A stretch of DNA of 64,000 nt. It comes from Macrostomum lignano. Lineage: Eukaryota. The stretch lies in the NCBI GenBank assembly GCA_002269645.1, contig NIVC01002664.1, forward strand, positions 53,473 through 117,472, given 5' to 3'. Shown piece after piece: positions 1 to 20,417 of this stretch. Below the pieces are notes generated by a model. That model was not told the DNA's origin, made no database searches, and saw only the letters and a program-made list of their open reading frames with translations. A program made the position numbers and the translations under genes. Numbering within the stretch: the stretch's first letter is position 1; every line of letters starts with the position of its first letter.

Positions 1-3000
1 GACAGTTTGGCCTCCCGTTCGGCGACACGCTGTGCCACCGATTCCGTCAGCTCTTTGAGCTCCGGGAAGTCGTCGAGATTGTCGATTAGCGGGATCAGCA
101 GTGGCTCGATGCTTGGGTGCTTGCTGGCTGGAATTGGGCGATGCAGGTGAATTGAGACTGCATTCTTGATGGGCCGAGTGATAGACGGGAATGTACACTC
201 GATTGGGATAGAGAGGCTGTATGTACATTCTTGATAGGTGGAGTGGTGATAGTGAAACTGTACACTCGATTGGGATAGAGAGGCTGTGTGTACATTCTTG
301 ATAGGCGGAGTGGTAGAGGGGATTGTAATATTCCTGCACGAAAACGAGACGCACGAGTTTGCGTGTAGGAAAATCATTGTCTTTTGACCATAGACAAAGT
401 CATTCCTGCACGGTTTTCGAGAAACGTTAAGAAGAGATGAAAATTGAGTGGAGAGTTTATAGAAAAGTGTATAAAGCTTATTGACTATGGCGTCTGTAAT
501 CGACTCGGCTCTGAATCCTCCATTAATTGATTTTCGCTATGCTACGGTGTCTGGATTAATTGGCGACGAAATGTTTATTGAAAGTGTGTCCAGCAACTTT
601 GAGAGGACGGGCGACGATTTGACTCCACTGATAGCGGATTGCACGTTCAGCGAGGAATTAGAGAAACTTTTCAGCTCGGATCCGGAAACCTTGTGTAACC
701 TTGACGAATTGGAAAGTCTGGCCGCTCAACTGGAACGCGACAACGAATGTCATTCGACTGTCTCTAAGGATAAAGCTGTGATCAACCGCTTGACGGCCTG
801 GTTGGCGGAGAATAATTTAAAAGTGGATTACGCGACTGCTTCGGTGGAAGAAATTGCCAAATGGGTCCGCTACTTCTATGCGACTCTGCGTAAGTCAGAC
901 GGCAGCTTCTATTCGCCGAATACAATCGTAGGAATTCGAGCCGCACTGTTCAGGTACTTTATGAAATTACGTGGCCTCAATATCATCGCTCACGAGGCTT
1001 TTCATAGCGCGAATTTGATGGTGAAGAATGTTTGCAATGCGTATTTGAAGTCCGGTGGTCGAGTGCAGCATTACGAAGCCATTGAGTCGGACGACCTTGT
1101 CAAGCTTGCTTCTTACTTCGACAGAAGCACTCCAACACGTTTGCAAGAAGAGGTATATTTCAATGTGTTATTTTATTTCGGCAATCGCGGCAGAGAATGG
1201 CTACGAGGTCTCACTGTTCGTTCATTCCGAGAGAAGGCCCTATCAAACGGAGCTATGGCGATCGAGTTGCAAGGCAGCACCTCAAAGAATGTAAAAGGCT
1301 CGAGTGACATGCGACTCTGCGACGACAATAAACAGGCCTTGATGGTGGCCAAGCCGGAGTCAAGGCACTGTCCAGTTCAGGCCTTCCAGCTTTATTTGTC
1401 GAAAATTACTGCCGTGCCGGGTTGGAATCAGGAGGACTTCTTTCTGCGTCCGAAACCACGAGTGAATGCGGATGGCATCTGGTACACCAAAGTACCAGTT
1501 GGAATCAACACTTTGGGGCCGTTGCTCAAGAAGATCTCTTCGAATGCTAACCTGTCCAAGCTGTACACTCCGCATTGTGTGCGACCTACAGTTGTTACGG
1601 AGCTGCATGAAGCTGGCTTTTCTGTCGAAAAAATTGCGAAGGTGACAGGTCACAAGGTGAGCAATTCTTTATTCTTAGTAAGTTTATTGACACATGGACA
1701 AGGAATTTATTAAACACCACCTCTATTCACAGAATAGCGCGTCGGTAGAACGATACATCTGGAGAGGCAAGAAGAGGGACTCGATCATGGCAGGGATGAG
1801 TGATCAGCTGACAGTCGCTCTAGCTGGAACTATGCCGGCACCAAGTTCTACATTGAGCGAAGCTCCTGCAAGGGCTGTTACAACTACCGACCCGTGCGCC
1901 CTGAGCGACGCTCCTACAAGGGCTGTTGCGACTACCGACCCGTGCGGATCAGCGTCAATGTCAACTTTCAAGAAGTCACTGGTTGTTGAAGAATCGACCA
2001 CCACACTTGTAGCAGCCCCCACTAAGCGGATGAAGATTTTGGCAAACGGCGAAACGAATGTTGTGCAGTTTATTTTCGAGTAAATGCCGAGAGGGGTGTG
2101 AGTAGGTCTATAGACTCATTAACTGTTTCCCTAGTTCCACTTATTATCCTTTTTGTTCTTCCATATTGTTATTGATTACATATTAAGTTGCTTCTAAAAA
2201 TAAATTGTTAAATCGTGCAGGAATGAAGTCATTCCTGCACGATAAGCTAACGTATGTCAAGTGATTTCTACCATAGACACAGACATTCCTGCACGATAAT
2301 AAATCGAAAAAAATCATTCCTGCACGCTGTGGTCAAACGACAATGTACACTCGATTGGGATAGAAAGGCTGTATGTACATTCTTGATAGGCGGAGTGATA
2401 GAGGGGATTGTACACTCGATTGGGATAGAAAGGCTGTATGTACATTCTTGATAGGCGGAGTGGTGATTGTGAGACTGTATACTCGATTGGGATAGAGAGG
2501 CTGTATGTACATTCTCGATAGGCGGAGTGGTAGATATCTCTAGGCGGAGTGGTAAATATCTCTAGGCGAGATATGTACACTGTAGTACATGTAGGAGGAT
2601 AATTAAAAACTTTAAGGAACAAAATACAGTGTACATTGTTTTTATCGATGCAGGCAGTGGTGAGCACTATAGGGTTCTGATGCTCCCGGTTCTAGGAAAT
2701 ATTGATTTTTTATTCTTATCAATTCGAATGAGATCATTCTTTGATTAAGCGTTTAAGACTTCCGGGAAGTGAACTACAATTAATCAATCTATGAAAGCTT
2801 TTGAACTCCCACCCTTCCTACAATAGTTTAAATGAAATTAAAAGATACAAAGTACTATAGTTATCCAATAAACCTAATTGGAATTGAAAAAAACATTAGA
2901 AGCGCTTTTCACTGTAAAGACTTTTATAATACAAATGATATTCCTGTTGTTGAGTAGTTAATCAGATATATTAAGGAATTTTCCATTTTACTGTACGACC

Positions 3001-6000
3001 TCCTCTTGTAAGCAATTTAATCAAATCTGAAGTTAATCCGGCTTTACGTTGAAGAACAATTTGGAAATTAAAATAACTGCGTCTTGCAATAAAGCGTGAT
3101 AGCAGTTCAAAATGTATTCGAGTGCACTGCAGACAGTCATTTTAACACATTTCTCATTCACAGATTTAGACCTTATCTACAGATTTCACATCTACAGATT
3201 TCTTATCTGCAGATTTCTCATCTACAGATTTCTCATCTACAGATTTCTCATCTAAAGATTTCTCATTCACACATTTCTCATCTACAGATTTCTCATCTAC
3301 AGATTTCTCATTCACACATTTCTCATCTACAGATTTCTCATCTACAGATTTCTCATTCACACATTTCTCATCTACAGATTTCTCATCTACAGATTTCTCA
3401 TTCACACATTTCTCATCTACAGATTTCTCATTCACACATTTCTCATCTACAGATTTCTCTCCCAGAGATTTGCAATTCCTGCTCACCTTGCAATTTGCAC
3501 AGAACGACAACATCCCGACTGCCAATCTGATCCGATAGCGATTCGTGATCCTGCAGCTCGGGCAGCTTGAGCAGTTGGCCACCCACTGTGCTGAGCTCGA
3601 TGACAGCTGGAGTAGGAAAGTTTTTATAGATTTTTAGTATGTAGCCAGGCTCTTAAAATTGTGGAAATCCTAGATATTTTTATTGTGAAATGCCTGACAG
3701 GAAGCTTAGCAAGTTTCAGTGGGAGATTTTTTCCAATCTGACAAATAGTTCGCAGCAGGAGGCAAAAAAACACGATTACAGCATTTTTCCCATGAACTTA
3801 TCTCAACAGAATTTTTTCACGCTTGTAGCTGCTACAATCACATGTAAGCAATACAGACAACTCATCATCTGTGAGTTCGCTGCGTACGAGTACTCGTATA
3901 CGCAGTAGTGTTATATTTCCACCGAGTTCCTCCGGGAGAACTGTAGCATCCAGCTAGCTAGCTGGTTATGACACCAACACTGCCAACCAACATGCTTGAC
4001 CTGTCACTACACGTATTGGAAATTTCACCCTACGTCAGTTGCTTACCGGGCTAAAAATAAATAGAATTGAGGCTTTTTAACGAAACAGATGAGTGAAAAG
4101 CAAACCCCAGCAAAATGTTTTTACAGGGCACAAAAGATCTGCTTTGACTCTTTGGACTTTTAATGTATTGAAAACTAAAAGGGTTACGCAGGATTCTGTT
4201 GAGGCACGCAGGGGTCGGAAAAAAGATTGTGGGGAGAGCCAATCAAAGCCACGTACTTTGCACGCAGAGGACGGAAAACAGGAGGTTAGCGAGAGCCAAT
4301 CAAAAGCCACACATTTCACACGCAGAGGGACGGAAAACAGGTTGCGGGGAGAGCCAACCAAAAGCCACGTACTTCGCACGCAGGGGATGGAAAACAGGGG
4401 GTTGGCGAGAGCCAACCAAAAGCCACGTTACTTCGCACGCAGGGGATGGAAAACACGGGGTTGGTGAGTGAGAGCCAACCAAAAGCCACGCACTTTGCAC
4501 GCAGGGGACGGAAAACAGGAGGTTAGCGAGAGCCAATCAAAAGCCACACATTTCACACGCAGAGGGACGGAAAACAGGTTGCGGGGAGAGCCAACCAAAA
4601 GCCACGTACTTCGCACGCAGGGGATGGAAAACACGGGGTTGGTGAGTGAGAGCCAACCAAAAGCCACGCACTTCGCACGCAGGGGATGGAAAACAGGGGG
4701 TTGGCGAGAGCCAACCAAAAGCCACGTTACTTCGCACGCAGGGGATGGAAAACACGGGGTTGGTGAGTGAGAGCCAACCAAAAGCCACGCACTTCGCACG
4801 CAGGGGATGGAAAACACGGGGTTGGTGAGTGAGAGCCAACCAAAAGCCACGCACTTCGCCCGCAGGGGATGGAAAACACGGGGTTGGTGAGTGAGAGCCA
4901 ACCAAAAGCCACACACTTCGCACGCAGAGGGACGGAAAACACGGGGTTGATGAGTGAGAGCCAACCAAAAGCCACGTACTTCGCACGCAGGGGACGTAAA
5001 ACAGGGGGTTGGTGAGTGAGAGCCAACCAAAAGCCACGCACTTCGCACGCAGGGGACGGAAAACAGGGTGTTAGCGAGAGCCAACCAAAAAGCCACGTTA
5101 CTTCGCACGCAGGGGATGGAAAACAGGGGGTTGGTAAGTGAGAGCCAACCAAAAGCCGCGTACTTCGCACGCAGGGGACGGAAAACAGGGGGTTGGTGAG
5201 TGAGAGCCAACCAAAAGCCACGTACTTCGCACGCAGGGGACGGAAAACAGGGAGTTGGTAAGTGAGAGCCAACCAAAAGCCACGTACTTCGCACGCAGGG
5301 GATGGAAAACACGGGGTTGGTGAGTGAGAGCCAACCAAAAGCCACACACTTCGCACTTAGGGGGTGGGGCGGAAAACAGGGGGACAGAAGGATTGACCCG
5401 ATCTCAAATCTTAAGAGTACGTTCGTATAACCATTCCAGTCTACATGTAGATAGCTCTATCTAGTTTATGCAACGTAAGAAACATCTCATAGATTTTAAA
5501 ACCAATATAAATCTGTTGAGAGCTCACTATTTTGATCGAGTTTGCAGCTACGCCTGATTGCGCTGATCAGATGCTCTTTCTGGCACGTGATGTTGAACAG
5601 GGCTGTCTTATTGTCTGAAATAAGTAATTTTAATTGGTAAAGTGAAATATTTTTTGAATCCGAAAAAATTCAATCAGGTATCATTTTCCCTTAGAGTTAG
5701 GTCTGCACATGTATAATACAGCAAACTGAAAATCTATATGCATTGTATTATCCGTCTAGCCTAAATCTATGCTTAAAATATTCAATTGTCTCCGAAGCAT
5801 TGGGCAGTTCTCGTATTACAAACCTAAGAGGCTTTGCAGCCTAATGCATCAGTTGCAGTGGGGGAGCATAGGGAGAGAAAGAGAGTAGAAGAAGAGCATT
5901 CAGAACCCAAAGTCGTACCTGAAGTCAGAATGGCAACAGGTGAATGGCACTCAGAAACAAGAGATGACAAGACGATAAAGAGAGAGAGAGAGATCCTCTC

Positions 6001-7567
6001 GTCCCGACATTGATGAAGCTATGCGATGCTGGACAGTCTCAGATTAGTAAACAGTGCAATCATTTACAACTCCACTCTGTCCCTCTCCATCCTCATCGCT
6101 ATGGTATTAGTTGATGACCCACATAAAAATAGGCCTGGCAACCAATCCCAGTGATTGATGAAGCTGCTACAGAGTTTCCGGTTGATGCTGAGAAGTCCAG
6201 AGAGCAAGCAGTTCGAGATTTCCGGGGTCTTCTCTGTGGGTGAGGATGCCGCCCTATTCAACTAACCATATGACAAAATACTCTCGAAGGGATTCATCAA
6301 TATGAACTGTTAATACGCTTTGAGTATGATTAACTGGTACCCTCGATACACTGCAACAGTAGCCAATCTGCAGTGTTCCGCGGTAATTAGTCTGTCTAGA
6401 CTAGATGAACACAGACAAAATGTGATTGTAATAAACTAATATGAGACTTGTCCAAACTGTCATTGGTGATACGATGCTGATTCATTTAGTTTCATAATAT
6501 TCAACATATTTCCTAGTTTTCTTTCGAATCAGGTGACTATTCACTAATGAACTCACTCATTCACTAATTTGCTCATTCAAACACTCATTAATTGCTCATC
6601 AACTTACTTTTCATCTTAAGGTGTCACTCATGAACTCACTCATGAAGTCAATCATGAAGTCACTCATGAACTCACTCATAAACTCACTCATGAAATCGCT
6701 CATGAACTAATCAACTCACTCATGAACTCACTCATGAACTCACTCATGAACTCACTCATGAAGTCAATCATGAAGTCACTCATGAACTCACTCATGAAGT
6801 CAATCATGAAGTCACTCATGAACTCACTCATAAACTCACTCATGAACTCACTCATGAACTCACTCATGAAGTCAATCATGAAGTCACTCATGAACTCACT
6901 CATGAACTCACTCATGAACTCACTCATGAAATCGCTCATGAACTAATCAACTCACTCATGAACTCACTCATGAACTCACTCATGAACTCACTCATGAAGT
7001 CAATCATGAACTCACTCATAAACTCACTCATGAACTCACTCATGAACTCACTTATGAACTCACTCATAAACTCACTCATGAACTCACTCATGAACTCACT
7101 CATGAACTCACTCATAAACTCACTCATGAACTCACTCATGAACTCACTCATAAACTCACTCATGAACTCACTCATGAACTCACTCATGAACTCACTCATG
7201 AACTCACTCATGAACTCACTCATGAACTCACTCATGAACTCACTCATGAACTCACTCATGAACTCACTCATGAACTCACTCATGAACTCACTCATGAACT
7301 CACTCATAAACTCACTCATGAACTCACTCATGAACTCACTCATGAACTCACTCATGAACTCACTAGGCATTGCTAGGCATGAACTCACTCATGAACTCAC
7401 TCATGAACTCACTCATGAACTCACTCATAAACTCACTCATTAACTCATCAACCCTTCCCAGCCCACTCACCGCCGTGCAGCACACAGAAGTACAGCGGTG
7501 GACAGGCCGCAGAACCGGTCGCAGAGCTCCGACCCGAGCCGGCGTCAGCGGCGGTGTCTGGCGTCAT
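1..7567 (-). CDS. CXorf65/C22orf15-like protein, multi-exon, 3' end off window (exons 7567-7471, 5614-5528, 3606-3487, 127-<1)
   Basis: All three introns are GT-AG with consistent phase 1. The spliced product is MTPD...PLYFCVLHG/DNKTALFNITCQKEHLISAIRRSCKLDQN/TVIELSTVGGQLLKL...SRDVVVLCKLQ/ASKHPSIEPLLIPLIDN. From recall this follows the CXorf65/C22orf15 pattern (FIKHGDNQQFLVN..C..IRSK..TIDLC..G..YYVCKV..FVPLL). Confidence 0.75.
190..327 (+). repeat. about 65-bp tandem repeat (TGTACACTCGATTGGGATAGAGAGGCTGTATGTACATTC...), left part of an array interrupted by YR element 1
   Basis: Two units here; the same unit resumes at 2343-2530. Confidence 0.85.
328..2347 (+). mobile_element. Crypton-like tyrosine-recombinase DNA transposon, copy 1
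   Basis: YR gene flanked by directly repeated 25-bp sites (388-412, 2271-2295) and several TTCCTGCACG boxes. It interrupts a tandem array, with TGTA at both junctions (324-327, 2344-2347). It lies in intron 3 of the CXorf65-like gene, on the opposite strand. Confidence 0.8.
487..2083 (+). CDS. Tyrosine recombinase, Crypton/DUF3504 (KCTD1/ZMYM/QRICH1-related) type; exons 487-1656 and 1733-2083, 506 aa
   Basis: Motifs LQEEVYFNVLFYFGNRGRE (Arg), SKN, HCVR, TGHK, then SVERY (Tyr at 1754-1756) after a 76-nt phase-0 intron (GTGAGC...TTCACAG, 1657-1732). Collinear with the ORF at 17602. Confidence 0.9.
2343..2570 (+). repeat. about 65-bp tandem repeat, right part, decaying
   Basis: About three units matching 190-327. 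Confidence 0.85.
3166..3455 (+). repeat. 15-bp minisatellite (CAGATTTCTCATCTA / CACATTTCTCATTCA)
   Basis: Direct inspection; source of the LQISH/VDEKS pseudo-ORFs. Confidence 0.95.
4220..5355 (+). repeat. about 60-bp minisatellite (GAGAGCCAACCAAAAGCCACGTACTTCGCACGCAGGGGATGGAAAACACGGGGTTGGTGAGT)
   Basis: Many tandem variant units with no unique spacers. Confidence 0.95.
6540..7445 (+). repeat. 12-bp minisatellite (ATGAACTCACTC)
   Basis: Direct inspection; source of the MNSL/MSEF pseudo-ORFs. Confidence 0.95.
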
Positions 7568-8139
7568 GCCTGCCTTGTCTCGTTCTGGCTGGCTGAGAAA
7601 CCTGTGGTTTCGCTTCTAAATTAAAAGATGATTATTGCATATATATTTTACACTTCGCTAGCTCAGACCGCTCTAATAGTAACATTATCATTTCTGCTAG
7701 GCATTGCAACCAACTATTTAGAGAAAAAGCAAGAGATGAAAGACAGGAAAGAGATGTGAGAGATAGAGAGACAAAAAATACGTAACTTGGCCTATTCCCA
7801 GCTACAAGTGGGGTCATAATAGCTTAGAGAAACTGCGGTATACCCAGTCCTGCATCACCTTGAATAGCTCGTATACTCTAGTTGGCGTACGTAGAAATTT
7901 AAACGAACTCAAAGTTAGTCTGTTTCTGGATGCTCGCTCTGTGCTCTTCTCTTTCTCCTGAGCAACAGCTCTTCTTAGAACTGCTTTGAAATTCTGTGAG
8001 CTGCTGGTAAACAGCTGTGAAAAATTTGTAAGCAATACTTGATGTCTCTGATGACCGCTTGCTAAAGGCCATTCATCATTATGTCATAATTATGTATTTA
8101 GCTTGATCTTTTACCAAATCTAGCTTTCAAATGTGCGTG

Positions 8140-8815
8140 ATCTGTCATTCTATCCATGCGTGATCTGTCACTCAATCTATGCATGATCTGTCAGTCAATC
8201 CATGCATGATCCGTCACTCAATCCATGCGTGATCTGTCACTCAATCCATGCGTGATCTGTCATTCTATCCATGCGTGATCTGTCACTCAATCTATGCATG
8301 ATCTGTCAGTCAATCCATGCATGATCCGTCACTCAATCCATGCGTGATTTGTCACTCAATCCATGCGTGATCTGTCACTCAATCCATGCGTGATCTGTCA
8401 TTCTATCCATGCGTGATCTGTCACTCAATCTATGCATGATCTGTCAGTCAATCCATGCATGATCCGTCACTCAATCCATGCGTGATCTGTCACTCAATCC
8501 ATGCGTGATCTGTCACTCAATCCATGCATGATCTGTCAGTCAATCCATGCATGATCCGTCACTCAATCCATGCGTGATCTGTCACTCAATCCATGCGTGA
8601 TCTGTCACTCAATCCATGCGTGATCTGTCACTCAATCCATGCGTGATCTGTCACTCAATCCATGCGTGATCTGTCACTCAATCCATGCGTGATCTGTCAC
8701 TCAATCCATGCTTGATCTGTCACTCAATCCATGCGTGATCTGTCACTCAATCCATGCTTGATCTGTCACTCAACCCATGCTTGATCTGTCACTCAATCGA
8801 TGCTTGATCTGTCAA
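8140..8815 (+). repeat. 23-bp minisatellite (TGATCTGTCACTCAATCCATGCG)
   Basis: Direct inspection. Confidence 0.95.
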
Positions 8816-9373
8816 AATGGCGGCAATTTCGCCTGCATTTAAATCGATAAACTGATGGAGAATTATTGAAGAGACTGAAGGCAGAAGAAACCGTCAATTA
8901 TGTGCTTAAAAAGTGTAGATTTTCCCTTGCCAATGCGTTTTTTAGGCAAAACATCTTTCTTGCGGTCCTTGCTTTCTACATTGGCAGCAGAAAGTGCACA
9001 AAAAACACCCCCAGTTTGTTGCCAGCAATCAGATGCCAGCCTTCATAAGCGCTCTGACAGATTAAATTTGTTAGCTGCAGTGAAGTCATATTAAGGAGGA
9101 GAGCTCTGAAGTTTAATCATATCCTGCATTATGATATGGTGTACTGTGGCTCACCACTAATTCTTGGCTAGGCATTGAAGGCTGAAATAAATATGGAGTG
9201 AATAACTTCTTTGTCGATTGCAGAGCTGCGACAGAAATATGGAATGCCCGTGCATAATTGATGGGGCTTACTGCTTCAGATGAAGCTCTGAAGCGATTGC
9301 GGCTTGAATGAAGATGGCTGTGCAATGCGGACTCAGTGTGAATAGACTGGTTATGCTGGATATTGGATTAATA

Positions 9374-10285
<912 letters not shown>

Positions 10286-10690
10286 ATGGACATGAAAGGA
10301 ACAGTCCTTAAAATTCTGACTTGACTCGGTCCGTGAGTGGCCAGGCTGCTCTGAGCCCAAGCCCAGGCTCCTCCAGCCTCCTATAAAGTTGCCTCATCAT
10401 TGGTTTGTACGAGCTTCACTGTTCCAGACTGTGGAAGCTCAAGTTGGCTCTGCAGGTGTGACTTGTTAACACAAACATATTAACAGCTGTAATATTTACA
10501 TATTAACTCCTTTATTAACTGAGAACAGGTGAGAATTGAATTGTTTGTCTCTAAAATGAGTTGGGCTTTGACTTTGAGCCGAGTGTGCGCGAGAGTATAC
10601 TATGTAAATGTATTATTTTTTATTTTGTGTTATACGCTCGTGCGTTTCATCAATCTGTCTCATCAGTTCTAGATTGCTACTATTTCAGAG

Positions 10691-12529
10691 ATGCGACTTA
10701 CCGGTCTGCTGGCTCTGCTGTCGGTGCTGGGGACTGCACTGTCTGCGCCACAACAACTCGGTGAGCTTCTGTGGGAAATCCTGTCTTTGTATCCACCTAT
10801 CTTTGTATCTGCCTGTCTTTGTATCTACCTGTCTTTGTATCTACCTGTCTTTGTATCTACCTGTCTTTGTATCGATCTGTCTTTGTATCTACCTGTCTTT
10901 GTATTTAACTGTCTTTGTATCTATCTGTCTTTGTATTTATCTGTCTTTGTATCTACCTGTATTTGTATCCACCTGTCTTTGTATTTACCTGTCTTTGTAT
11001 CTATCTGTCTTTGTATCTACCTGTCTTTGTATCTACCTGTATTTGTATCTACCTGTCTTTGTATCTACCTGTCTTTGTATCTACCTGTCTTTGTATTTAC
11101 CTGTCTTTGTATCTATCTGTCTTTGTATCTACCTGTCTTTGTATCTACCTGTCTTTGTATCTACCTGTCTTTGTATCTACCTGTCTTTGTATCCACCTGT
11201 CTTTGTACCTATCTGTCTTTGTATCTACCTGTCTTTGTATCCACCTGTCTTTGTATCTACCTGTCTTTGTATCCACCTGTCTTTGTATCTACCTGTCTTT
11301 GTATCCACCTGTCTTTGTATCCACCTGTCTTTGTATCTACCTGTCTTTGTATCCACCTGTCTTTGTATCCACCTGTCTTTGTATCTACCTGTCTTTGTAT
11401 CCACCTGTCTTTGTATCTACCTGTCTTTGTATCCACCTGTCTTTGTATCCACCTGTCTTTGTATCCACCTGTCTTTGTATCTACCTATCTTTGTATCTAC
11501 CTGTCTTTGTATCCACCTGTCTTTGTATCTACCTGTCTTTGTATCTACCTGTCTTTGTATCTACCTGTCTTTGTATCCACCTGTCTTTGTATCTACCTGT
11601 CTTTGTATCCACCTGTCTTTGTATCCACCTGTCTTTGTATCTACCTGTCTTTGTATCCACCTGTCTTTGTATCTACCTGTCTTTGTATCCACCTGTCTTT
11701 GTATCTACCTGTCTTTGTATCTACCTGTCTTTGTATCCACCTGTCTTTGTATCTACCTGTCTTTGTATCCACCTGTCTTTGTATCTACCTGTCTTTGTAT
11801 CTACCTGTCTTTGTATCTACCTGTCTTTGTATCCACCTGTCTTTGTATCTACCTGTCTTTGTATCTACCTGTCTTTGTATCCACCTGTCTTTGTATCTAC
11901 CTGTCTTGATCTAATGCTGATGATCTAATCCTAATCTAATGCTTATCTAATCCTAATCTAATGCTTATCTAATGCTGATCTAATGCTGACCTAATGCTGA
12001 CCTAATGCCGACCCAATGCAGATCTAATGCTGATCTGATGCTGATCTAATGCTGACCTAATGCTGACCTAATGCCGACCCAATGCAGATCTAATGCTGAT
12101 CTGATGCTGATTTAATGCTGATCTAATGCTGACCTAATGCTGACCTAATGCCGACCCAATGCAGATCTAATGCTGATCTAATGCTGATCTAATGCTGATT
12201 TAATGCTATTCATCTAGCATCCTGTACTTGTGAATTCGTAAAATCCCTCAGATGAGCAACAGTTGCGGCAGCAGAAGCCGATGCCGGATGCTGAACTCCT
12301 CACTGACCTCATTGAGAAGCGAGGCGTCGAGCTGGCGGGCGACATGTACTGCTGCGTGAACGGCATCCCCGGCTGCTGCCGCCGGCGCCGCCGCCGCTCA
12401 GCGCCGGGTGCCGACGAGGCCCAGGAGAAGCTGCGTGCCGCCTGCAGCTGCTGCCGCAGGCGGTCGGCCTTGTCGAGTCCCTCGCCCTGCTGCCTGGCCT
12501 GTCGCCAGTTGGCGCACCAGCTGGGCTGA
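10691..12529 (+). CDS. Secreted Cys-rich peptide precursor, 115 aa (exons 10691-10760, 12252-12529)
   Basis: Signal peptide MRLTGLLALLSVLGTALSA. Phase-1 intron G/GTGAGC...CCCTCAG/AT joins in frame to DEQQLRQQKPMPDAELLTDLIEKR-GVELAGDMYCCVNGIPGCC-RRRRRR-...CSCC-RRR-...CCLAC. Acceptor-like TTTCAG just before the ATG; TATAAA at 10382. Confidence 0.8.
10780..11905 (+). repeat. 16-bp minisatellite (CTGTCTTTGTATCTAC), intronic
   Basis: Direct inspection. Confidence 0.95.
11910..12210 (+). repeat. 11-bp minisatellite (CTAATGCTGAT), intronic
   Basis: Direct inspection. Confidence 0.9.
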
Positions 12530-12854
12530 AGTTGAACAACAAAGACTTGAAAACAAAACAAAAGCGGAACAAACAGATCGAAACAAAAATCCCCTTGTAA
12601 TAAACGTTTATGAGCTTTGACTCAAGCGGCTACGACTTGCTTGCAAATGCAGCCTTTTTTCTGAATTTTGTTTGCTTCTGTTCGGCTGCAGTTGCCGAGC
12701 TCAGGGCTGCGAAATGCTTTCGGTCGATGCCGCCTTGCCGCGGGATGGAGTACTTATTGATTGGTCTCGGAACCTCCTACTCGTAATTAGACAATGAGGC
12801 TGATGAGGGCTCTCTATTATGAGCGATCGAAGATGTCCCTCTGGCAGCTCGTGC

Positions 12855-13535
<681 letters not shown>

Positions 13536-14112
13536 AACAGTGGAAAATGAACAGGTCAAAACCTCTGAAAGGAAATGCTGGTTTTTTCGGGCCTGCAGCT
13601 TCGCCAATGCTATTTTGGTCGAATGCAGCTGCTGATCCGCCCACTCGGTCAAGGGCCAGCCCAAATTTACAATTGGCAGTGCGACGCACTCTTCAACTAT
13701 TCTTGAGTCTCGCGCGCACTTCATTAATTAACTTTGCTGCTCAACTTCCGAATAATTTCAGCCAGTTTCGCCCCTCCAGTTAGGAACTGGATTCCTTTCT
13801 CCTCCATCCTTTTCTCCACTTGGAGCTGTCTACACATTGATTCATTGTCAGCGCGAGCTGGTTAGCAGAGGAAGTGAAAATCCGGCTTCCCAGCCGCCGA
13901 AAACATGTTTTCTTTATTTCTAGCCATGACAGTTTCCAGCCTCCAAAATTGAATAGTCAGTGGGTTAATTCAATTTTGTGGGAATTCGTAGAAATAGCTG
14001 GTTAATTTGATCCATTGTTCCAGTTCTGCGTGACAATCTGCCGTGCTGACAATTTCCTAAGAGTTTTATTATTTACTATGCCCTAGCCAATTAGCTATGA
14101 GGGAGATAAGTG

Positions 14113-14848
14113 TCAGATGAGGGTGTCAGGTGAGACAGTAGGGATGTCAGTTAAGACGGTGAAGATGTCAGGTGAGACAGTGAGGATGTCAGATGAGACA
14201 GTGAGGATGTCAGATGAGACAGTGAGGATGTCAGATGAGACAGTGAGGATGTCAGGTGAGACAGTGAGGATGTCAGATGAGACAGTGAGGATGTCAGATG
14301 AGACAGTGAGGATGTCAGATGAGACAGTGAGGATGTCAGGTGAGACAGTGAGGATGTCAGGTGAGACTGTGAGGATGTCAGGTGAGACTGTGAGGATGTC
14401 AGATGAGACAGTGAGGATGTCAGATGAGACAGTGAGGATGTCAGGTGAGACAGTGAGGATGTCAGATGAGACAGTGAGGATGTCAGGTGAGACAGTGAGG
14501 ATGTCAGATGAGACGTTGAGGATGCCAGATGAGACAGTGGGGATGTCAGATGAGACAGTGAGGATGTCAGATGAGACAGTGGGGATGTCAGATGAGACAG
14601 TGAGGATGTCAGATGAGACAGTGGGGATGCCAGATGAGACAGTGGGGATGTCAGATGAGACAGTGGGGATGTCAGATGAGACAGTGAGGATGTCAGATGA
14701 GACAGTGAGGATGTCAGATGAGACAGTGAGGATGTCAGATGAGACAGTGAGGATGTCAGATGAGACAGTGAGGATGTCAGATGAGACGTTGAGGATGCCA
14801 GATGAGACAGTGAGGATGTCAGATGAGACAGTGAGGATGTCAGATGAG
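14113..14848 (+). repeat. 21-bp minisatellite (GTCAGATGAGACAGTGAGGAT)
   Basis: Direct inspection. Confidence 0.95.
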
Positions 14849-15379
14849 AATATTTGAATTGAACGTTTCAAACAGTATTAATTTAAAATAGATTTTATGC
14901 TTCATACGGTACTTGTTGCGTGAGAAAACAGATTTGGATAGAATATCTAAAAATTTCTTCCTTTAATCTTCACTTCCCCAGTCCATTAGTCCAGTTTACC
15001 CCAAACCGAATGGGATATTAACTGACGTTCCCAGCCGCCTTTGAGCAGCAAGTCAAGTGAAAGGCGGTTGAATTATTCACAATAAAATCAATGCGCCCGA
15101 CCGCCACAGGATCGTATCTGAACGAAATTGAAGATCTAAACGTAAAATATGAAGTAATATTTATTTTTTTATGAAATCTACTCAACATACTACTGATCAA
15201 AAACTTGAGTAGTAATAACAGCTTTGAATATGGATGAAGGAATAAGAGTCTCGTGATAGATTCCCCTACTAGATTGTACACCAAGACAAGCAATGAAAAA
15301 CGGGAGCCTTTTGGCAGGAGCAAATTGGCAAAAGCACTTTGGCATGAGTATTTGGACAGGTGCAAATCATTTCGATTTA

Positions 15380-15980
15380 ATAATAGTGTCGTTTCAATAA
15401 TAGCGTCGTTTTAAAAGCAGTGTCGTTTTAATGGTAGCATCATTTTAATGATAGTGTCGTTTTAATAATAGTGTCATTTTAATATTAGTGTCGTTTCAAT
15501 GATAGTGTCGTTTTAATAATAGTGTCATTTTAATATTAGTGTCGTTTCAATGATAGTGTCGTTTTAATAATAGTGTCATTTTAATATTAGTGTCGTTTCA
15601 ATGATAGTGTCGTTTTAATAATAGTGTCATTTTAATATTAGTGTCGTTTCAATGATAGTGTCGTTTTAATAATAGTGTCATTTTAATATTAGTGTCGTTT
15701 CAATGATAGTGTCGTTTTAATAATAGTGTCATTTTAATATTAGTGTCGTTTCAATGATAGTGTCGTTTTAATAATAGTGTCATTTTAATATTAGTGTCGT
15801 TTCAATGATAGTGTCGTTTTAATAATAGTGTCATTTTAATATTAGTGTCGTTTCAATGATAGTGTCGTTTTAATAATAGTGTCATTTTAATATTAGTGTC
15901 GTTTCAATGATAGTGTCGTTTTACTAGTAGTGTCGTTTTAATAGTAGCATATTGTTTTAATAATGGTATCGTTTTTATAG
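15380..15980 (+). repeat. 17-bp monomer satellite with a 51-bp higher-order unit
   Basis: TAGTGTCGTTTCAATGA-TAGTGTCGTTTTAATAA-TAGTGTCATTTTAATAT repeated exactly in the core; flanks are degenerate. Confidence 0.9.
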
Positions 15981-17288
15981 AAGCATCGTTTTTAGTAGCA
16001 TATAGTGCATAATAGTTTAGTAGTAATTTTAAGACTATTTACAAATAGAAAGCAAGATATTTGACATAGTGTTAACGAAAACCATCTACTATAATAGCAT
16101 AGTTGCGGAACAATGATTGAAGCATTGCACGATACGATAACAATTTGTCTATGGCCATTAAGATAAAACCTGACTTTACAAAATACAGGACGGCTAATGG
16201 CTGAAATATTTGCACAGGCAAGCACAATTAACAATACAAAGCATATGAAAGCTCTTAAACAAAATTTCAAATACAATAAGAACACTTATCTCAAGCTAAA
16301 AGAATGGCCGACTCAAACGATGTCGCCTGTCCAGCACGTCGTTTGATGCTCTCCAGCGAGAACATAGTTAGACATATTGCCAGCCAAAATGTCAACTTTA
16401 TCAACGAATTTGACTGGAGCAACGGAACCATTACGTCCGGCTGTTGATGCAACAAATCTGCTCAAGGCGAAAGCAATATGACATTCGTTGAGAGTACAAT
16501 AGCAACCCGAGACGTCGCGTAACCGTAAAACAAGTGTCGAGGCACATCGTTTGGACGTGTGCTCGAAAACCGGCAATCGATGGCACCGGCACCAGACACA
16601 ACAGTGACGCCGCCGAACTAGATGAGCCCATGCCAGCCGGACCGTCAACCAGCGGCGTTACAGCGGACCATGCGGCAACTCGCGATGAGAATGGAGACAT
16701 CAGCGTCGACACCAACGTGACAGATGCAGCGACATGCAGCGAGATCGAGCAGCTACAACTGAGTCCGCTGATCCCGCACGACAGTCAGAACTAAACATAC
16801 AAATGTCGAATAGTTCGGTACGCAGGACTCAGATCGGTCAAAAAATCTACCAAACGCAAAACAGCGGACAACGCGGTCGTCTCAATTGCAGCATTGGATG
16901 GAGACACAATCAGTGCACCCGTCCGATTGAGCGCTAAGCAGACTGTTCAACAGGCCAAGGCGACACGGCCACATGGCGAAATGACGATGGCGACAAGGAG
17001 TCAATGCGACACGACGATGACGGCGGCTGCGTTGACAGACGCCGATTAGAATGCGGAAGAGTTTTCACGTCGACTGTATGGTAAGAGAGAATATATTTTA
17101 CATCAATCTGTGCAACTATACAGTAGTAATATACACTCAGCAACATTGAAAAGTGTCCACGTCTGCACAAAAGGCTACACTAGCTGAACGATTAGGATTG
17201 AAAGGTTTTTAACTATGTTTGGGCTATAGACAATCAAAATAAGGCAACAAAGAATGTTAGGATTCTTGAACGCTAACGAGTGCGTCAT

Positions 17289-19216
17289 TGGCAAAAGCAC
17301 GAGTGCGCGAAGCGCACGAGTGCTCTTTGCCATAGACGCACGAGTTGGCGTGCATGAATCTCATTCTTATTTGATTCTTTCATTTTACATTCTGCCCAAA
17401 AAAGGTTATAATTGATATTACTATAGACATTACCCGCTGCTAGCGGGGGTGCGGGGGCAGAGCCCCCGCTGGGGGCGTGGGGGCGAAGCCCCCACATTTT
17501 AACCATAGACAAAATCAATCTTGCACGCTGGAGATGGTGAGGGGAGGGGTAACGAAAGGAGATTACAATTGAAAGCTAGTTGCCACTATAAAAACAAAGC
17601 AATGGTTTCTCTAATCAACCCGTCGATTCTTCCTCCGCTTATGGACATGCGATACGCAACCGTCGACGGTTTGTCATCCGAAGAGGTGGCAATTGCAGCC
17701 ATTTCTAGCAAGTGGGAAAGAGAGAACGAATGGCTGCTGCCCATGTTGGATGCAATTGCTGACACCGATTTAGAGAAGCTGCTAGCGACTGACCCGATGT
17801 CGAATGCAAGTCTGGATGAACTGGAGAGCCTTGCTCAGCAAGTTGAACGTGAGAATCAGTGTCAATCAACCATTGCAAAGGAATTGGCTTCCGTCGGTCG
17901 TTTCGAGAAGTTTCTGACTGACAATGGTGTACAACTGGATCTCAAAGTTGCCTCTGTGGATGATATAGCTAAATTCGTGAGGTACTTTTATGCTGGATTG
18001 AGGAAGCCTGACGGTTCTTTCTATTCGCCAAACACTGTGGTTGGAGTCCGATCTGGTTTGTTTCGCCATATTATGAAGTTGCGAGCGATTGACATAATAA
18101 ATGATAAAGCCTTTCATGCCGCCAATCTTACCATGAAGAGCATTTGCAACGCTTTCCTTCGATCTGGAGGAAGAGTGAAGCACTACGATGCTATTGAGAG
18201 TGACGACCTGAAGAAGCTCGGTAAATACTTCGATCGGTCGAATCCGGTGCGTCTTCAAGAGGAAGTATACTTTAACATCATTTATTACTATGGGAATAGA
18301 GGCCGTGAATGGTTGCGTGGTTTGAGGTTTGATCGGTTTTGTGAGAAGCGGCTCGCCAATGGACTCTACGCGATTGAGCTTGTTCAGGGAGATTCAAAGA
18401 ATCTACATGGTTCTACCAGCGTCGCCGTCATGGTTGACAACAAGCAAGCGTTGATGGTGTCAAAGGGAGATTCTGCCAAATGCCCAGTTGAGGCGTTCAG
18501 ACTGTACAAGCAAAAGGTCACCGAAGTTGAAGGATGGAACGGAGTGGACTTCTTTCTGCGACCAAACGCTAACTTTCGTTCATCTGGTAAGTGGTACAGC
18601 AAGAGTGCAGTAGGAGTCAACACCCTTGGGCCTCTGATGAAGAAATTTTCTACGTCCGCCGGATTGTCCAAGCCATACACTGCGCATTGTGTGCGTGCAA
18701 CTGTAATCACAGAACTTCACGACGCTGGATTTAATGTCGAAACTATCGCTAAAGTGACTGGCCACAAGCGAGGTGCATCCGTCGAGCGCTACATTCGACG
18801 CGGGAATAAACGCGAACAAGCGATTTGTGCTATGAGCCATCAACTAACGGCTGCCGTGGAGGTGGCTACTACGGCCGACCCTCAAGTTGTACGCAGTGAG
18901 GCAAGTGACCCAGTTGACGTGATCAACGATCCTACGTCGGGCTCGGTGCGCTGTGTGCGAGTTATTCCGGAAAATCGGAAGAATTTGAAGATTAGAGCCA
19001 ATGGTGACACCAACGTTATTGAATTTGTATTTGAGTAGCATCTGATCGCAAGCGAAAAACTAGTAATGATATTAACCAATTTTCACTCGTTATTTTCTTG
19101 TTGTCTAAAAATAAATTGCAATCCTGCACGTAAGATGCATTAGACCTAAAGGATAATTTGCCATAGACAACATCAATTCTGCACGCTTGGGCGTGCCAGA
19201 TCAGCAATCCTGCACG
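17289..19216 (+). mobile_element. Crypton-like tyrosine-recombinase DNA transposon, copy 2 (left boundary approximate)
   Basis: Directly repeated 25-bp sites at 17503-17527 and 19161-19185. GACGCACGAGTTGGCGTGCATGAA (17335) matches the copy 1 left end (348). Right-end TGCACG boxes have the same spacing as copy 1. Confidence 0.8.
17602..19038 (+). CDS. Tyrosine recombinase, Crypton/DUF3504 type, intronless, 478 aa
   Basis: MVSLINPSILPPL start aligns with copy 1 MASVIDSALNPPL. Motifs YYGNRGRE, SKN, HCVR, TGHKRGASVERY are all intact. Confidence 0.92.
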   Translation: MVSLINPSILPPLMDMRYATVDGLSSEEVAIAAISSKWERENEWLLPMLDAIADTDLEKLLATDPMSNASLDELESLAQQVERENQCQSTIAKELASVGRFEKFLTDNGVQLDLKVASVDDIAKFVRYFYAGLRKPDGSFYSPNTVVGVRSGLFRHIMKLRAIDIINDKAFHAANLTMKSICNAFLRSGGRVKHYDAIESDDLKKLGKYFDRSNPVRLQEEVYFNIIYYYGNRGREWLRGLRFDRFCEKRLANGLYAIELVQGDSKNLHGSTSVAVMVDNKQALMVSKGDSAKCPVEAFRLYKQKVTEVEGWNGVDFFLRPNANFRSSGKWYSKSAVGVNTLGPLMKKFSTSAGLSKPYTAHCVRATVITELHDAGFNVETIAKVTGHKRGASVERYIRRGNKREQAICAMSHQLTAAVEVATTADPQVVRSEASDPVDVINDPTSGSVRCVRVIPENRKNLKIRANGDTNVIEFVFE

Positions 19217-19269
19217 CAGAATCAAATAAGAATGAACAGCGAAACAAATCCATGCCCATTTCCATGCTG

Positions 19270-19600
19270 TGTACGTGTCTAAAGCACAGTCAGTAACACG
19301 TATAGATAGCAACCACGAGCATCCAACAGACCGCTCACTCGTCGAGACATTCCCGAACAAGGCGCCGCAGAAAGTCTTGTGGAAGCTGTTGCCACGCGAC
19401 TGAAAGCGCATTGCGCAGCTGAACCATTTTCTGGAGGGATAGAGATTGTTGCACCGAATCGTGCGCTTCAGGAAATCCCACACGTGCTCAATCGAGTTCA
19501 TATCCGGTGATCTGGACGGCCAACGCAGAGTGCGCCAATCAGTCATTTAGCGGACTATCGTTGTCACCTGCATCCAGATGCCTCCAGTAAACCCCTGTAC
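19270..19600 (-). mobile_element. Tc1/mariner transposase C-terminal remnant
   Basis: WPSRSPDMNSIEHVWD is the Tc1 WPxxSPDLNPIExxW motif. A frameshifted RRVSGLLDARG resembles the Tc1 C-terminus. Confidence 0.8.
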
Positions 19601-19671
19601 ACTCGTTACTGTAACGCTTTTCCCTGTGACACCAGATATCGGTCTTTACACTTTCCTGCCCTTTTTGCTCA

Positions 19672-20417
19672 TTTGTCTATGGCCCAAAACTAATTGGCGA
19701 AACAATCGATCGTGCTGCCCATAGACCCTTGGCGCAAGGGTGGGCACTTTTAAATGTTGCTGAGTTTATATAGTCAGCCAGATTCGAGGAGTTTATTCAA
19801 CAGACGAATTCTGCTGGCTAATAAAGTGGACGCTGTCGATATGGTGCGCGCACTTCGTAATCATGTTGACCTAGTTGTCCGCAATCTGTCAGCTAGCAAA
19901 ATGGCATTTCACACTGACACCAGCGGTACTGCCGTCGACGATCTCGAATAAGGGAGTAGACATGTCCGCTAGATTGTCGCCAATGCCATTGATGGCTTTG
20001 AACGCATTATATTGCAATATTATTTAAACAAACAGGGCCATAACTCATGCTGAAACTCGATCTCGTTTACGCTTGTAGCTGAACTTTTGTTGAAGTGACC
20101 TGCTTAAAACTTTCTTTAAAACTTTGAATTTTTTTAGTTAATGATCATGGGATGCCAGATGAGACACACGGTGTACATGCTCGGTGTATACACTCGATGT
20201 ACACACTCAATGTACATATTCAAGGTACACACTCAATGTACACACTCAATGTACACACTTAATGTACATTCAATGTACACAGTAATCACACTCAATTTAC
20301 ACAATCAATGTACATACTCAATGTACACACCCAGTGTACACAATCGACTCTCTCTAAACTGGTTTCCCAAAGATTTGCTTGTTGCTCAACGGTCAATGGG
20401 GTTTTGCCATAGACAAA
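19672..20417. mobile_element. Putative non-autonomous element bounded by inverted TTTGTCTATGGC/GCCATAGACAAA
   Basis: 12-bp perfect inverted repeat, extendable with CAAAAC/GTTTTG, sharing the Crypton-site core. Confidence 0.45.
20165..20345 (+). repeat. Degenerate CAATGTACACACT tandem repeat
   Basis: Direct inspection. Confidence 0.8.

Follow-up and report, generated by a model that had tools for sequence, protein, structure and literature searches.

Probable CryptonA-type DNA transposons in the flatworm Macrostomum lignano: shared termini, a degenerate 4-bp target and an array of subterminal sites

The CryptonA elements of animals were described in a survey by Kojima & Jurka (2011, PMC3212892) as lacking terminal repeats, and no non-coding sequence was found to be conserved between Cryptons; Platyhelminthes are missing from the list of host phyla given there. 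Here two loci are described from a 64,000-nt stretch of DNA of the flatworm Macrostomum lignano (assembly GCA_002269645.1, contig NIVC01002664.1, positions 53,473-117,472 of the forward strand; the whole of this stretch is referred to as the window, and all coordinates are those of the window). Each carries a gene for a tyrosine recombinase: element 1, the type of family A, occupies 326-2345 (+ strand, 2020 bp), and element 2, the type of family B, occupies 17257-19234 (+ strand, 1978 bp). Like CryptonA, they are DNA elements of ~2 kb with a single open reading frame (ORF), a DUF3504-type recombinase, no extra C-terminal domain and no reverse transcriptase (RT); their extremities (TAAT... and ...AATG) are neither inverted repeats nor long direct repeats, and non-autonomous derivatives exist. 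Unlike the published CryptonA elements, they show a match between terminus and target (AATG/A-N-T-G), 6-8 conserved 11-bp motifs, a 104-bp non-coding block in which families A and B are 88% identical, and, inside the element, an inverted copy of what the joined ends would form. What they add to a known kind of element is a terminus/target rule, a motif array, a mini-element and a joined-end palindrome, an end layout that is undescribed in the papers that could be searched. In that searchable literature no paper pairs Macrostomum lignano with Cryptons (Repbase and Dfam lying outside the comparison) or Cryptons with palindromes or subterminal sites, and no description of cis-sites in an animal Crypton later than the 2011 survey was found.

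An active Crypton, CryptonF-1_cRei, has been reported from Chlamydomonas reinhardtii (Lopez-Cortegano et al. 2023, PMC9977147); its terminus is CACCG and its target CAYCG, and after excision nothing but the target stays behind. The flatworm elements resemble it in having one terminus that matches a degenerate target, consistent with the circle-integration model of Goodwin, and CryptonF-1_cRei likewise inserts next to existing copies, with local rearrangements. It differs in belonging to the CryptonF group, in its protein architecture and in that its activity was directly observed, whereas here activity is deduced from the identity of copies; the part of the report available (PMC9977147) mentions neither a subterminal site array nor a palindrome.

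The ends of the flatworm elements were defined by comparing the window with ten further loci taken from the same assembly. Two pairs of loci share their flanks (L003 with L004, and element 1 of the window with L009), which fits the already known redundancy of the M. lignano assembly (PMC5730564); the independent insertions number six for family A, four for family B and two for the mini-element. Copies of element 1 lie at the unrelated loci L001, L003, L006, L007 and L008 and are 99.4-99.6% identical, while those of element 2 (L002, L005 and L010) have unrelated flanks and are 99.2% identical. The best match in the protein database is an M. lignano protein with 99% identity; at least 18 paralogous gene models exist (models up to Mlig005367g20), and the clusters at 90% identity contain 14 and 4 distinct M. 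lignano sequences.

Aligned in this way, the copies share precise termini, TAATATTCCTGCACG ... GGTCAAACGACAATG in family A (ending GACAATG) and TTAGGATTCTTGAACG ... AATCAAATAAGAATG in family B (ending AAGAATG). AATG forms the last bases of every element, and the left flank reads A-N-T-G at all 11 independent junctions (AATG in six, ATTG in four and ACTG in one), giving junctions of the form A-N-T-G/TAAT.. and ..AATG/flank, where the slash marks the boundary. Element 1 sits in a ~67-bp satellite, from an intact unit of which (2401-2424, reading GGGGATTGTACACTCG) the empty site can be read as GGGGATTG/TACACTCG. Because this neighbouring unit is intact, the insertion of element 1 can be described as exactly TAAT...CAATG added between ATTG and TACACTCG, with no other gain or loss. 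The rule that relates the terminus AATG to the target A-N-T-G fits the model that Goodwin put forward for Cryptons.

The recombinase gene is the sole long sense-strand ORF in each of the mapped elements (1978 and 2020 bp), and no RT, RNase H or DDE transposase is found in either. In element 1 the gene (487-2083, +) consists of exon 1 (487-1656), a 76-bp GT..AG intron (1657-1732) which splits GHK from NSASVERY, and exon 2 (1733-2083), together encoding 506 amino acids (identical to P0016); in element 2 it is an intronless, uninterrupted coding sequence (CDS; 17602-19038, +) of 478 amino acids (identical to P0012). The 76-bp intron is retained by every family A copy, which speaks for movement at the DNA level and against an intermediate of RNA. 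The motifs GNRGRE, SKN, HCVR, GH and SVERY are present in both proteins, as the initial annotation of this DNA had stated, so that candidates for all of the catalytic residues (R, K, H, R, H, Y) are there; R233, K266 and H362 are invariant in an alignment of eight sequences (both proteins and six relatives). Profile searches with Pfam agree: exon 1 of element 1 matches DUF3504 (PF12012) with 40 bits (cut-off 29.7) and the element 2 protein matches Phage_integrase with 28.9 bits (cut-off 27.1). The DUF3504 score of the element 2 protein, 24.1 bits, lies under the cut-off, with the same region aligned as in element 1, and homologues carry both PF12012 and PF00589. The two families share 54-56% protein identity and 58% CDS identity, which falls to 35% at third codon positions and reaches 70% in the best 105-nt window.

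In a PDB sequence search the sole match was the integrase of Tn1549 (Int), which is marginal (E = 0.04), and the fold was therefore taken from a predicted structure. The AlphaFold model has a mean confidence (pLDDT) of 61, with residues 90-400 mostly above 70 and disordered N- and C-terminal tails (predicted disorder covers residues 1-87 at the N-terminus). Its best structural matches are Cre-loxP complexes (E ~1e-8, target TM 0.62-0.66), followed by integron IntI (PDB 2a3v among them), Tn1549 Int, QRICH1 and Xer recombinases. Both proteins are thus DUF3504-type tyrosine recombinases with a predicted Cre-like fold. In the disordered C-terminal tail of family A there is a 48-bp tandem duplication (CDS 1854-1946; two 45-nt copies, 91% identical), and behind a variable linker both families have the common C-terminal peptide K(I/M)(L/R)ANG(D/E)TNV(I/V)(E/Q)F(I/V)FE. 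By analogy with the C-terminal helix of Cre, this conserved peptide might dock on a neighbouring protomer.

Taken with the intact ORFs, the 99.2-99.6% identity of copies at unrelated loci makes recent activity probable, and both elements are probably autonomous; this much of the initial annotation, which had proposed autonomous and possibly active Crypton-like recombinase elements, is supported.

That annotation had also drawn attention to a 25-bp site, CCATAGACAnnnnCAWTYYTGCACG, and it is indeed found exactly four times in the window, always on the + strand (at 388, 2271, 17503 and 19161), where 0.01 would be expected by chance. Each site joins CCATAGACA, across 4 nt, to a putative recombinase-binding element (RBE) with the core ATTCCTGCACG. 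The left site (L2) lies at 388-412 (+) in element 1, ~75 bp upstream of the ATG, and at 17503-17527 (+) in element 2; its distance upstream of the recombinase ATG is 75-100 bp in family A, family B and a third family, L011 (~55% protein identity), which keeps the combined site as CCATAGACAAAATCATTCCTGCACG ~75 bp upstream of its ATG. The right site (R2) lies at 2271-2295 (+) in element 1, with its RBE 49 bp from the right end, the same distance as in family B and the mini-element, and at 19161-19185 (+) in element 2. On this comparison of families, the combined 25-bp site is conserved as one unit.

These sites had been taken to flank the elements. They do bracket the ORF, but they are not the ends: the copies at other loci share boundaries that lie outside them, by 62-246 bp on the left and 50 bp on the right across the 11 junctions (in the window the left site starts 62 bp inside the left end of element 1 and 246 bp inside that of element 2). 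Since the 25-bp sites are subterminal, recombination between them cannot excise the element with the ends that its genomic copies have; it would leave both true ends behind, and no such product was seen among the copies examined. The expectation of a sequence-defined target and sites thus holds for A-N-T-G and for the cis sites, but not for the 25-bp site as the place of crossover. A Cre/Flp-like system had also been envisaged. The predicted fold is Cre-like, but the layout is not that of a simple two-site system: the 25-bp sites hold a single copy of the motif instead of inverted arms around a 6-8-bp spacer, and in place of two sites there are a site array and a palindrome. The suggested link of CCATA with the reverse complement of the TATGG terminus of CryptonS was rejected as a coincidence, as TATGG is the terminal motif of oomycete and diatom CryptonS (PMC3212892) and CCATAGACA is internal here and spread genome-wide.

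The RBE occurs well beyond the 25-bp sites. With at most one mismatch the core CAWTYYTGCACG is present in six copies in element 1 and four in element 2, with more degenerate copies at two mismatches; the 11-12-bp core ATTCCTGCACG, with up to two mismatches, is found seven times in family A, six times in family B and eight times in the mini-element (expected 0.4, 0.5 and 0.06, respectively). Several positions are common to all three (direct at +5/+6, inverted at +92/93, direct at -49 and at -18/19), and families A and B have in common a further RBE at -103/104 as well as the left 25-bp site. No RBE clusters were found outside the elements in the 170 kb examined. From this distribution, the 11-bp motif is likely to be the recombinase-binding site.

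At the left end of element 1 the terminal RBE (L1, 329-340, +) lies 4 bp from the terminus, corresponding to the +5/+6 position of all three element types. It is followed by its mirror partner, the inverted degenerate RBE CGTGTAGGAAA (362-372, -), which is at +92/93 in full-length copies, and by IR-L, CATTGTCTTTTGACCATAG (375-393, +), an inverted repeat of the right terminus whose 19 nt are 89% complementary and show covariation; in this copy 55 bp are deleted from the left palindrome centre. Towards the right end of element 1 come an AATAAA (2199-2204, +), a putative polyadenylation-type signal, inside the conserved block CTAAAAATAAATTG, and a palindromic pair of RBEs, ATCGTGCAGGAATGA-AG-TCATTCCTGCACGAT (2212-2243), whose 15-nt arms are 100% complementary; the direct half of this pair is R1, 103 bp from the right end, and the inverted half is missing in family B. 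Beyond R2 come R3 (2315-2326, +), 19 bp from the right end, and IR-R, CTGTGGTCAAACGACAATG (2327-2345, +), the right-terminal 19 bp, which end in the AATG crossover sequence. In element 2, L1 (ATTCTTGAACG, 17262-17272, +) is 5 bp from the left terminus and is followed by the left palindrome centre (17273-17348), made up of four GCAC-GA-GTGC-type units and a CCATTGAC/CCATAGAC pair about the centre GCGCGAAGCGC, then by the inverted RBE CGTGCATGAAT (17349-17359, -; position 93), the mirror of L1, and by IR-L, TCATTCTTATTTGATTCT (17361-17378, +), 18 nt which are 100% complementary to 19218-19235. At its right end the AATAAA block of the CTAAAAATAAATTG type is kept (19110-19115), directly followed by R1 (19119-19130, +); R3, found by motif search, is at 19205-19216 (+) and IR-R, AGAATCAAATAAGAATG (19218-19234, +), the repeat partner of 17361-17378, again ends in AATG. 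The spacing of the right-end sites is alike in the two elements (54-55 bp, then 31 bp).

It had been stated that the non-coding DNA around the sites does not align, which proves incorrect: besides the common spacing of the right ends, the left 104 bp are 88% identical between families A and B, as against 58% for the CDS. Because non-coding DNA is here the more conserved, the left end is either under strong cis-selection or was recently exchanged between the families. Family B also has a GC-rich block (17414-17486, core ~17430-17495) with two to three GGGGGC-NNN-GCCCCC hairpin units, placed between its mirror site and its left 25-bp site; it is not private to the window copy, as had been considered, but is present in three of the four family B copies (the window, L005 and L010) and deleted in L002.

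A repeat search in both elements showed that the right-terminal 18-19 bp recur in inverted orientation ~100 bp inward from the left end, and the region from the terminal RBE to the inverted RBE at +92 is palindromic as well, centred on GCGCGAAGCGC. Because of this arrangement, the two ends, if joined, would form an imperfect palindrome of 140-166 nt. Ends joined in silico are self-complementary over 143 nt in family A, 140 nt in family B and 166 nt in the mini-element, with self-alignment scores of 153-165 compared with 24 +/- 5 in shuffled sequences; the integrated left end alone retains ~100 nt of the palindrome. Across the three element types 92.7% of 179 cells in 60 pairs are complementary, compared to 26-46% when the partners are slid, and 15 of the 60 pairs have changes on both sides; none of 500 shuffles reached the observed values. 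In the outer helix, formed by the right terminus and the internal arm, covariation is seen in 7 of 17 pairs. The palindrome is not quite symmetric about the position of integration: the breakpoint lies ~20 bp inside one edge, and in each of the three types CAATG and the RBE stand 2-3 nt further apart on its side than they do at the mirror position.

A gene-less element of 263 bp, the mini-element, lies in L007 directly after a family A copy and has the same termini, TAATATTCCTGCACG ... GCCGACAATG. The resulting head-to-tail junction, ..GACAATG/TAATATTCC.., equals the predicted sequence of joined ends, which is compatible with excision and reintegration of a circle but is no proof of it. A second copy is found inside the family A left end of L003/L004, at the internal ATTG of the mirror site. 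Both mini-elements are thus at A-W-T-G sites within a few bases of motifs of a resident element, positions that fit a preference for DNA which would be occupied by recombinase. The left part of the mini-element stops at the mirror-site CATTG. It was considered whether it arose by recombination of a left with a right 25-bp site, and this was rejected, its sole CCATAGACA site being homologous on both sides to the right-hand site. The left end of L003/L004 is itself rearranged (997-1400), with a 73-bp unrelated insert, part of the left module duplicated in inverted orientation and fused at an RBE, and then the mini-element at ATTG; this looks like a site- or homology-mediated rearrangement between element ends. 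A different kind of derivative is found in L010 (1741-2930), a family B copy with internal deletions (~445 bp and 546 bp, both of CDS, are gone) in which the palindrome centre is deleted symmetrically and both termini and the right-end sites are intact.

A comparable layout was met in a distant relative. A contig of an unrelated ENA metagenome (L015) carries a CryptonA-like gene with 33% identity in the tblastn alignment, and has a 10-bp motif of its own, AACTTACCAC, in seven copies on both sides of the gene (1985-2230 and 4236-4463), with an AATAAA directly before the first downstream copy and a 111-bp palindrome, 93% complementary, with copies of the motif in opposite orientation at its two edges. 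This suggests that the end layout is not peculiar to Macrostomum, although L015 is known from one copy, in which the element ends are undefined. A metagenome scan with the 25-bp pattern gave three isolated matches with neither a recombinase nor site clusters, and these are therefore regarded as chance.

Taken together, we think it probable that both loci are autonomous CryptonA-type DNA transposons which move in the following way. The recombinase would bind the repeated RBE motifs at both ends and synapse the two junctions; strand exchange within or next to the TG shared by A-N-T-G and AATG would then release a circle and restore the target. In the circle the joined ends would complete the imperfect palindrome of 140-166 bp, with the crossover placed next to the terminal RBE and the conserved 2-3-nt asymmetry, and the predicted circle junctions are ..GTCAAACGACAATG-TAATATTCCTGCACG.. 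for family A and ..AATAAGAATG-TTAGGATTCTTGAACG.. for family B. Integration of the circle would reverse these steps and could take place at any A-N-T-G, with a preference for positions next to the ends of resident elements. On this scheme the 25-bp sites would be subterminal accessory or regulatory sites that couple an RBE to CCATAGACA, rather than sites of crossover. The cis region is a multi-site array with a long palindrome, for which a plain two-site picture of the Cre or Flp kind is too simple.

Several observations count against this scheme or parts of it. In the window and the fetched loci no circle junction, polymorphic empty site or excision footprint was seen; a 2-bp target-site duplication (TG) from a staggered cut is formally inseparable from conservative recombination; and binding of the protein to the 11-bp motif is deduced from the distribution of the motif alone. 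The crossover has a clear RBE on one side only: on the other the 19-bp arm resembles the RBE weakly (7/11 in family B, 5/11 in family A), so that the core site departs from the canonical pattern of an inverted pair. With regard to the palindrome, the covariation comes from just three sequence types, from which the structure itself was derived, and concerted evolution instead of selection could have produced it. In addition, of the six independent family A copies four have lost varying parts of the palindrome centre and a fifth has it rearranged, and hence much of the centre may be dispensable, or it may just be unstable. Among the six copies, 117, 100, 90, 76 or 62 bp separate the left end from the 25-bp site, one further copy being rearranged; the deletion breakpoints fall in the CGAG repeats, and the termini, RBEs and arms are always retained. 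It is doubtful whether the palindrome is mechanistically required as such. No firmer is the tentative suggestion that the recombination site is a structured palindrome of ~150 bp which exists only when the ends are joined, and in which the internal mirror copy and the 2-3-nt asymmetry mark which of two symmetric positions is cut.

Arrangements of this kind have partial counterparts among other recombinases. With Cre-loxP and Flp-FRT the flatworm elements share a predicted two-domain fold nearest to Cre, the same catalytic residues and binding motifs of 11-13 bp, and the perfect inverted pair of family A (2212-2243) is also a Cre/Flp-like feature; they differ in having no pair of identical minimal sites, in their many accessory copies, and in a degenerate 4-bp target in the place of a second full site. 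Many direct and inverted recombinase sites around an exchange core, with a circular intermediate that joins the ends, are found in the systems of lambda Int, Tn916/Tn1549 Int and the Tn4430 TnpI internal recombination site (IRS). Tn1549 Int is also the protein with both a sequence match (E = 0.04) and a structural match to the flatworm recombinase; unlike these arm-site systems, no separate N-terminal arm-binding domain was identified in the flatworm proteins, the first 87 residues of which form the predicted disordered tail. In the retroelement DIRS-1 an internal complementary region (ICR) is complementary to the extremities set side by side, and templates the restoration of the termini from cDNA (PMC7192593). 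Similarly, the flatworm mirror site (inverted RBE plus IR-L) is complementary to IR-R plus L1, and the circle junction would reproduce it inverted; in both cases a short junction sequence is proposed to define the integration site, and insertion into resident copies is preferred. DIRS-1, however, is a retrotransposon with RT and RNase H and with inverted terminal repeats of ~330 bp. Since the flatworm elements have neither RT nor such terminal repeats, the likeness is one of resemblance and not of membership, and since the intron is also kept, any role of the mirror site must be at the DNA level. The attC sites recombined by integron IntI are likewise imperfect palindromes of similar length, with conserved asymmetric bulges beside the crossover and a symmetry that is kept more than the sequence, but the bacterial attC recombines in the form of a folded single strand, and the likeness is no more than formal.

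Other explanations for the same features need to be weighed against this scheme. The two direct 25-bp sites could themselves be the recombination substrates, the DNA between them being excised as a circle with one hybrid site in the manner of Cre/lox or Flp/FRT; they are direct, they bracket the ORF in both families, the left one is kept in L011 and each contains a putative RBE, and yet with all 11 junctions outside them, with outer segments (on the left 62-246 bp long and on the right 50 bp) that are carried along when the element moves, and with neither an inverted half-site nor a 6-8-bp spacer, we regard this as very unlikely. The mini-element, moreover, retains only the right-hand copy as judged by flanking homology, and the breakpoints of L010 are elsewhere, although the 25-bp sites could mediate an occasional internal deletion. 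A role of these sites mainly in transcription is easier to entertain and would be compatible with the scheme preferred here: CCATAGACA may be a host core-promoter, transcription start site (TSS) or host-factor motif, the RBE would serve as an operator for autoregulation, and the right copy would drive or terminate 3' transcription. In ~90 kb CCATAGAC occurs 27 times outside Cryptons against ~3 expected, the CCATAGACA half being ~10-fold enriched genome-wide; the common context there is (G)TTTTGG-CCATAGACA-AA, in flanks that are otherwise unrelated. An ATG often follows on the same strand within 2-30 nt, as at a mariner transposase remnant (19674), whose start is 2 nt away, and the left 25-bp site lies 75-100 bp upstream of its ATG. 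On the other side, an ORF of at least 100 amino acids follows at 1 of 26 CCATAGACA sites compared with a background of 8.7%, which is not significant, the M. lignano genome paper (PMC5730564) describes no such motif, and the right-hand copy comes after the poly(A) signal, a place in which it is not obvious what a promoter would do. A mainly transcriptional function is therefore possible but not favoured.

The joined-end palindrome could also work as folded DNA, a cruciform or hairpin, with structure and bulges recognised as IntI recognises attC, or it could serve as a template for replication or copy-back as the DIRS-1 ICR does. As a single strand the joined end folds into one hairpin (dG -53 to -55 kcal/mol, z -10.7 to -13.3) with a 2-3-nt bulge directly 3' of the CAATG crossover. 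Its four CGAG cores are all on the same strand and would, in a hairpin, give tandem G.A pairs in a Y-GA-R context, or else they are direct repeats of a self-palindromic protein site. The arms covary, and a deletion-prone centre would be expected of DNA that extrudes. For DIRS-1, an internal segment that complements the joined termini is a requirement (PMC7192593), and Chlamydomonas Cryptons gained copies despite excising (PMC9977147). Against this, inverted symmetry and covariation are explained just as well if a multimeric protein binds double-stranded DNA symmetrically, the GCAC-GA-GTGC units are self-palindromic and inflate the apparent symmetry, no RT is encoded and introns are retained. 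We know of no eukaryotic tyrosine recombinase that uses folded substrates, and consider folding or copy-back improbable. Finally, the loci might be domesticated or dead recombinase genes of the KIAA1958/ZMYM kind, immobile and with repeats that are mere relics. DUF3504 proteins are often domesticated (PMC3212892), and one of the matches is a vertebrate KIAA1958-like protein. This is hardly credible in view of the many near-identical copies with common precise boundaries at non-homologous loci, of a non-autonomous derivative with the same ends, and of catalytic residues that are intact here and in part lost from the KIAA1958-like sequence.

Some further observations concern the surroundings. 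In the window the TTTTGG-CCATAGACA-AA motif is found at 16146(-), 19674(-), 19719(+), 20407(+), 21395(+), 21833(-), 57376(+), 58065(-) and 63486(-), and it is also frequent in L001, L002, L006 and L008. The mariner remnant mentioned above lies beside element 2 (19016-19700, -); it is of the Tc1/mariner DDE type (Pfam DDE_3, 23.7 bits, under the cut-off), and its N-terminus reads MSKKGRKV and then a stop, with CCATAGACA 2 nt before the ATG. The 15 kb between the two elements are made up for the most part of ten separate tandem-repeat arrays (2344-15947) with periods of 4, 11, 12, 15, 16, 21, 23, 51, 62 and 67 bp, and the long ORFs listed within this interval are repeat artefacts.

No class of eukaryotic DNA transposons is less well understood than the Cryptons, and here one system combines ends known to the base and a target rule of 4 bp with an 11-bp candidate binding motif, a 263-bp minimal derivative and an intact recombinase of 478 amino acids. 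The derivative indicates which sequences may suffice in cis, and biochemical and genetic tests of Crypton transposition are directly feasible; methods of transgenesis exist for M. lignano (PMC5730564). If it works, the system would provide a tyrosine recombinase of animal origin whose donor site is defined, and would reveal the ancestral DNA-binding ability of the domesticated DUF3504 genes (ZMYM2-4, QRICH1, KCTD1 and KIAA1958). An evolutionary link of Cryptons with DIRS elements has been proposed, and the ICR-like mirror site is relevant to it: should the palindrome prove to be required, it would be the first defined cis-architecture of any animal Crypton, and would suggest that the ICR logic of the DIRS retroelements was inherited from Crypton-like DNA ancestors.

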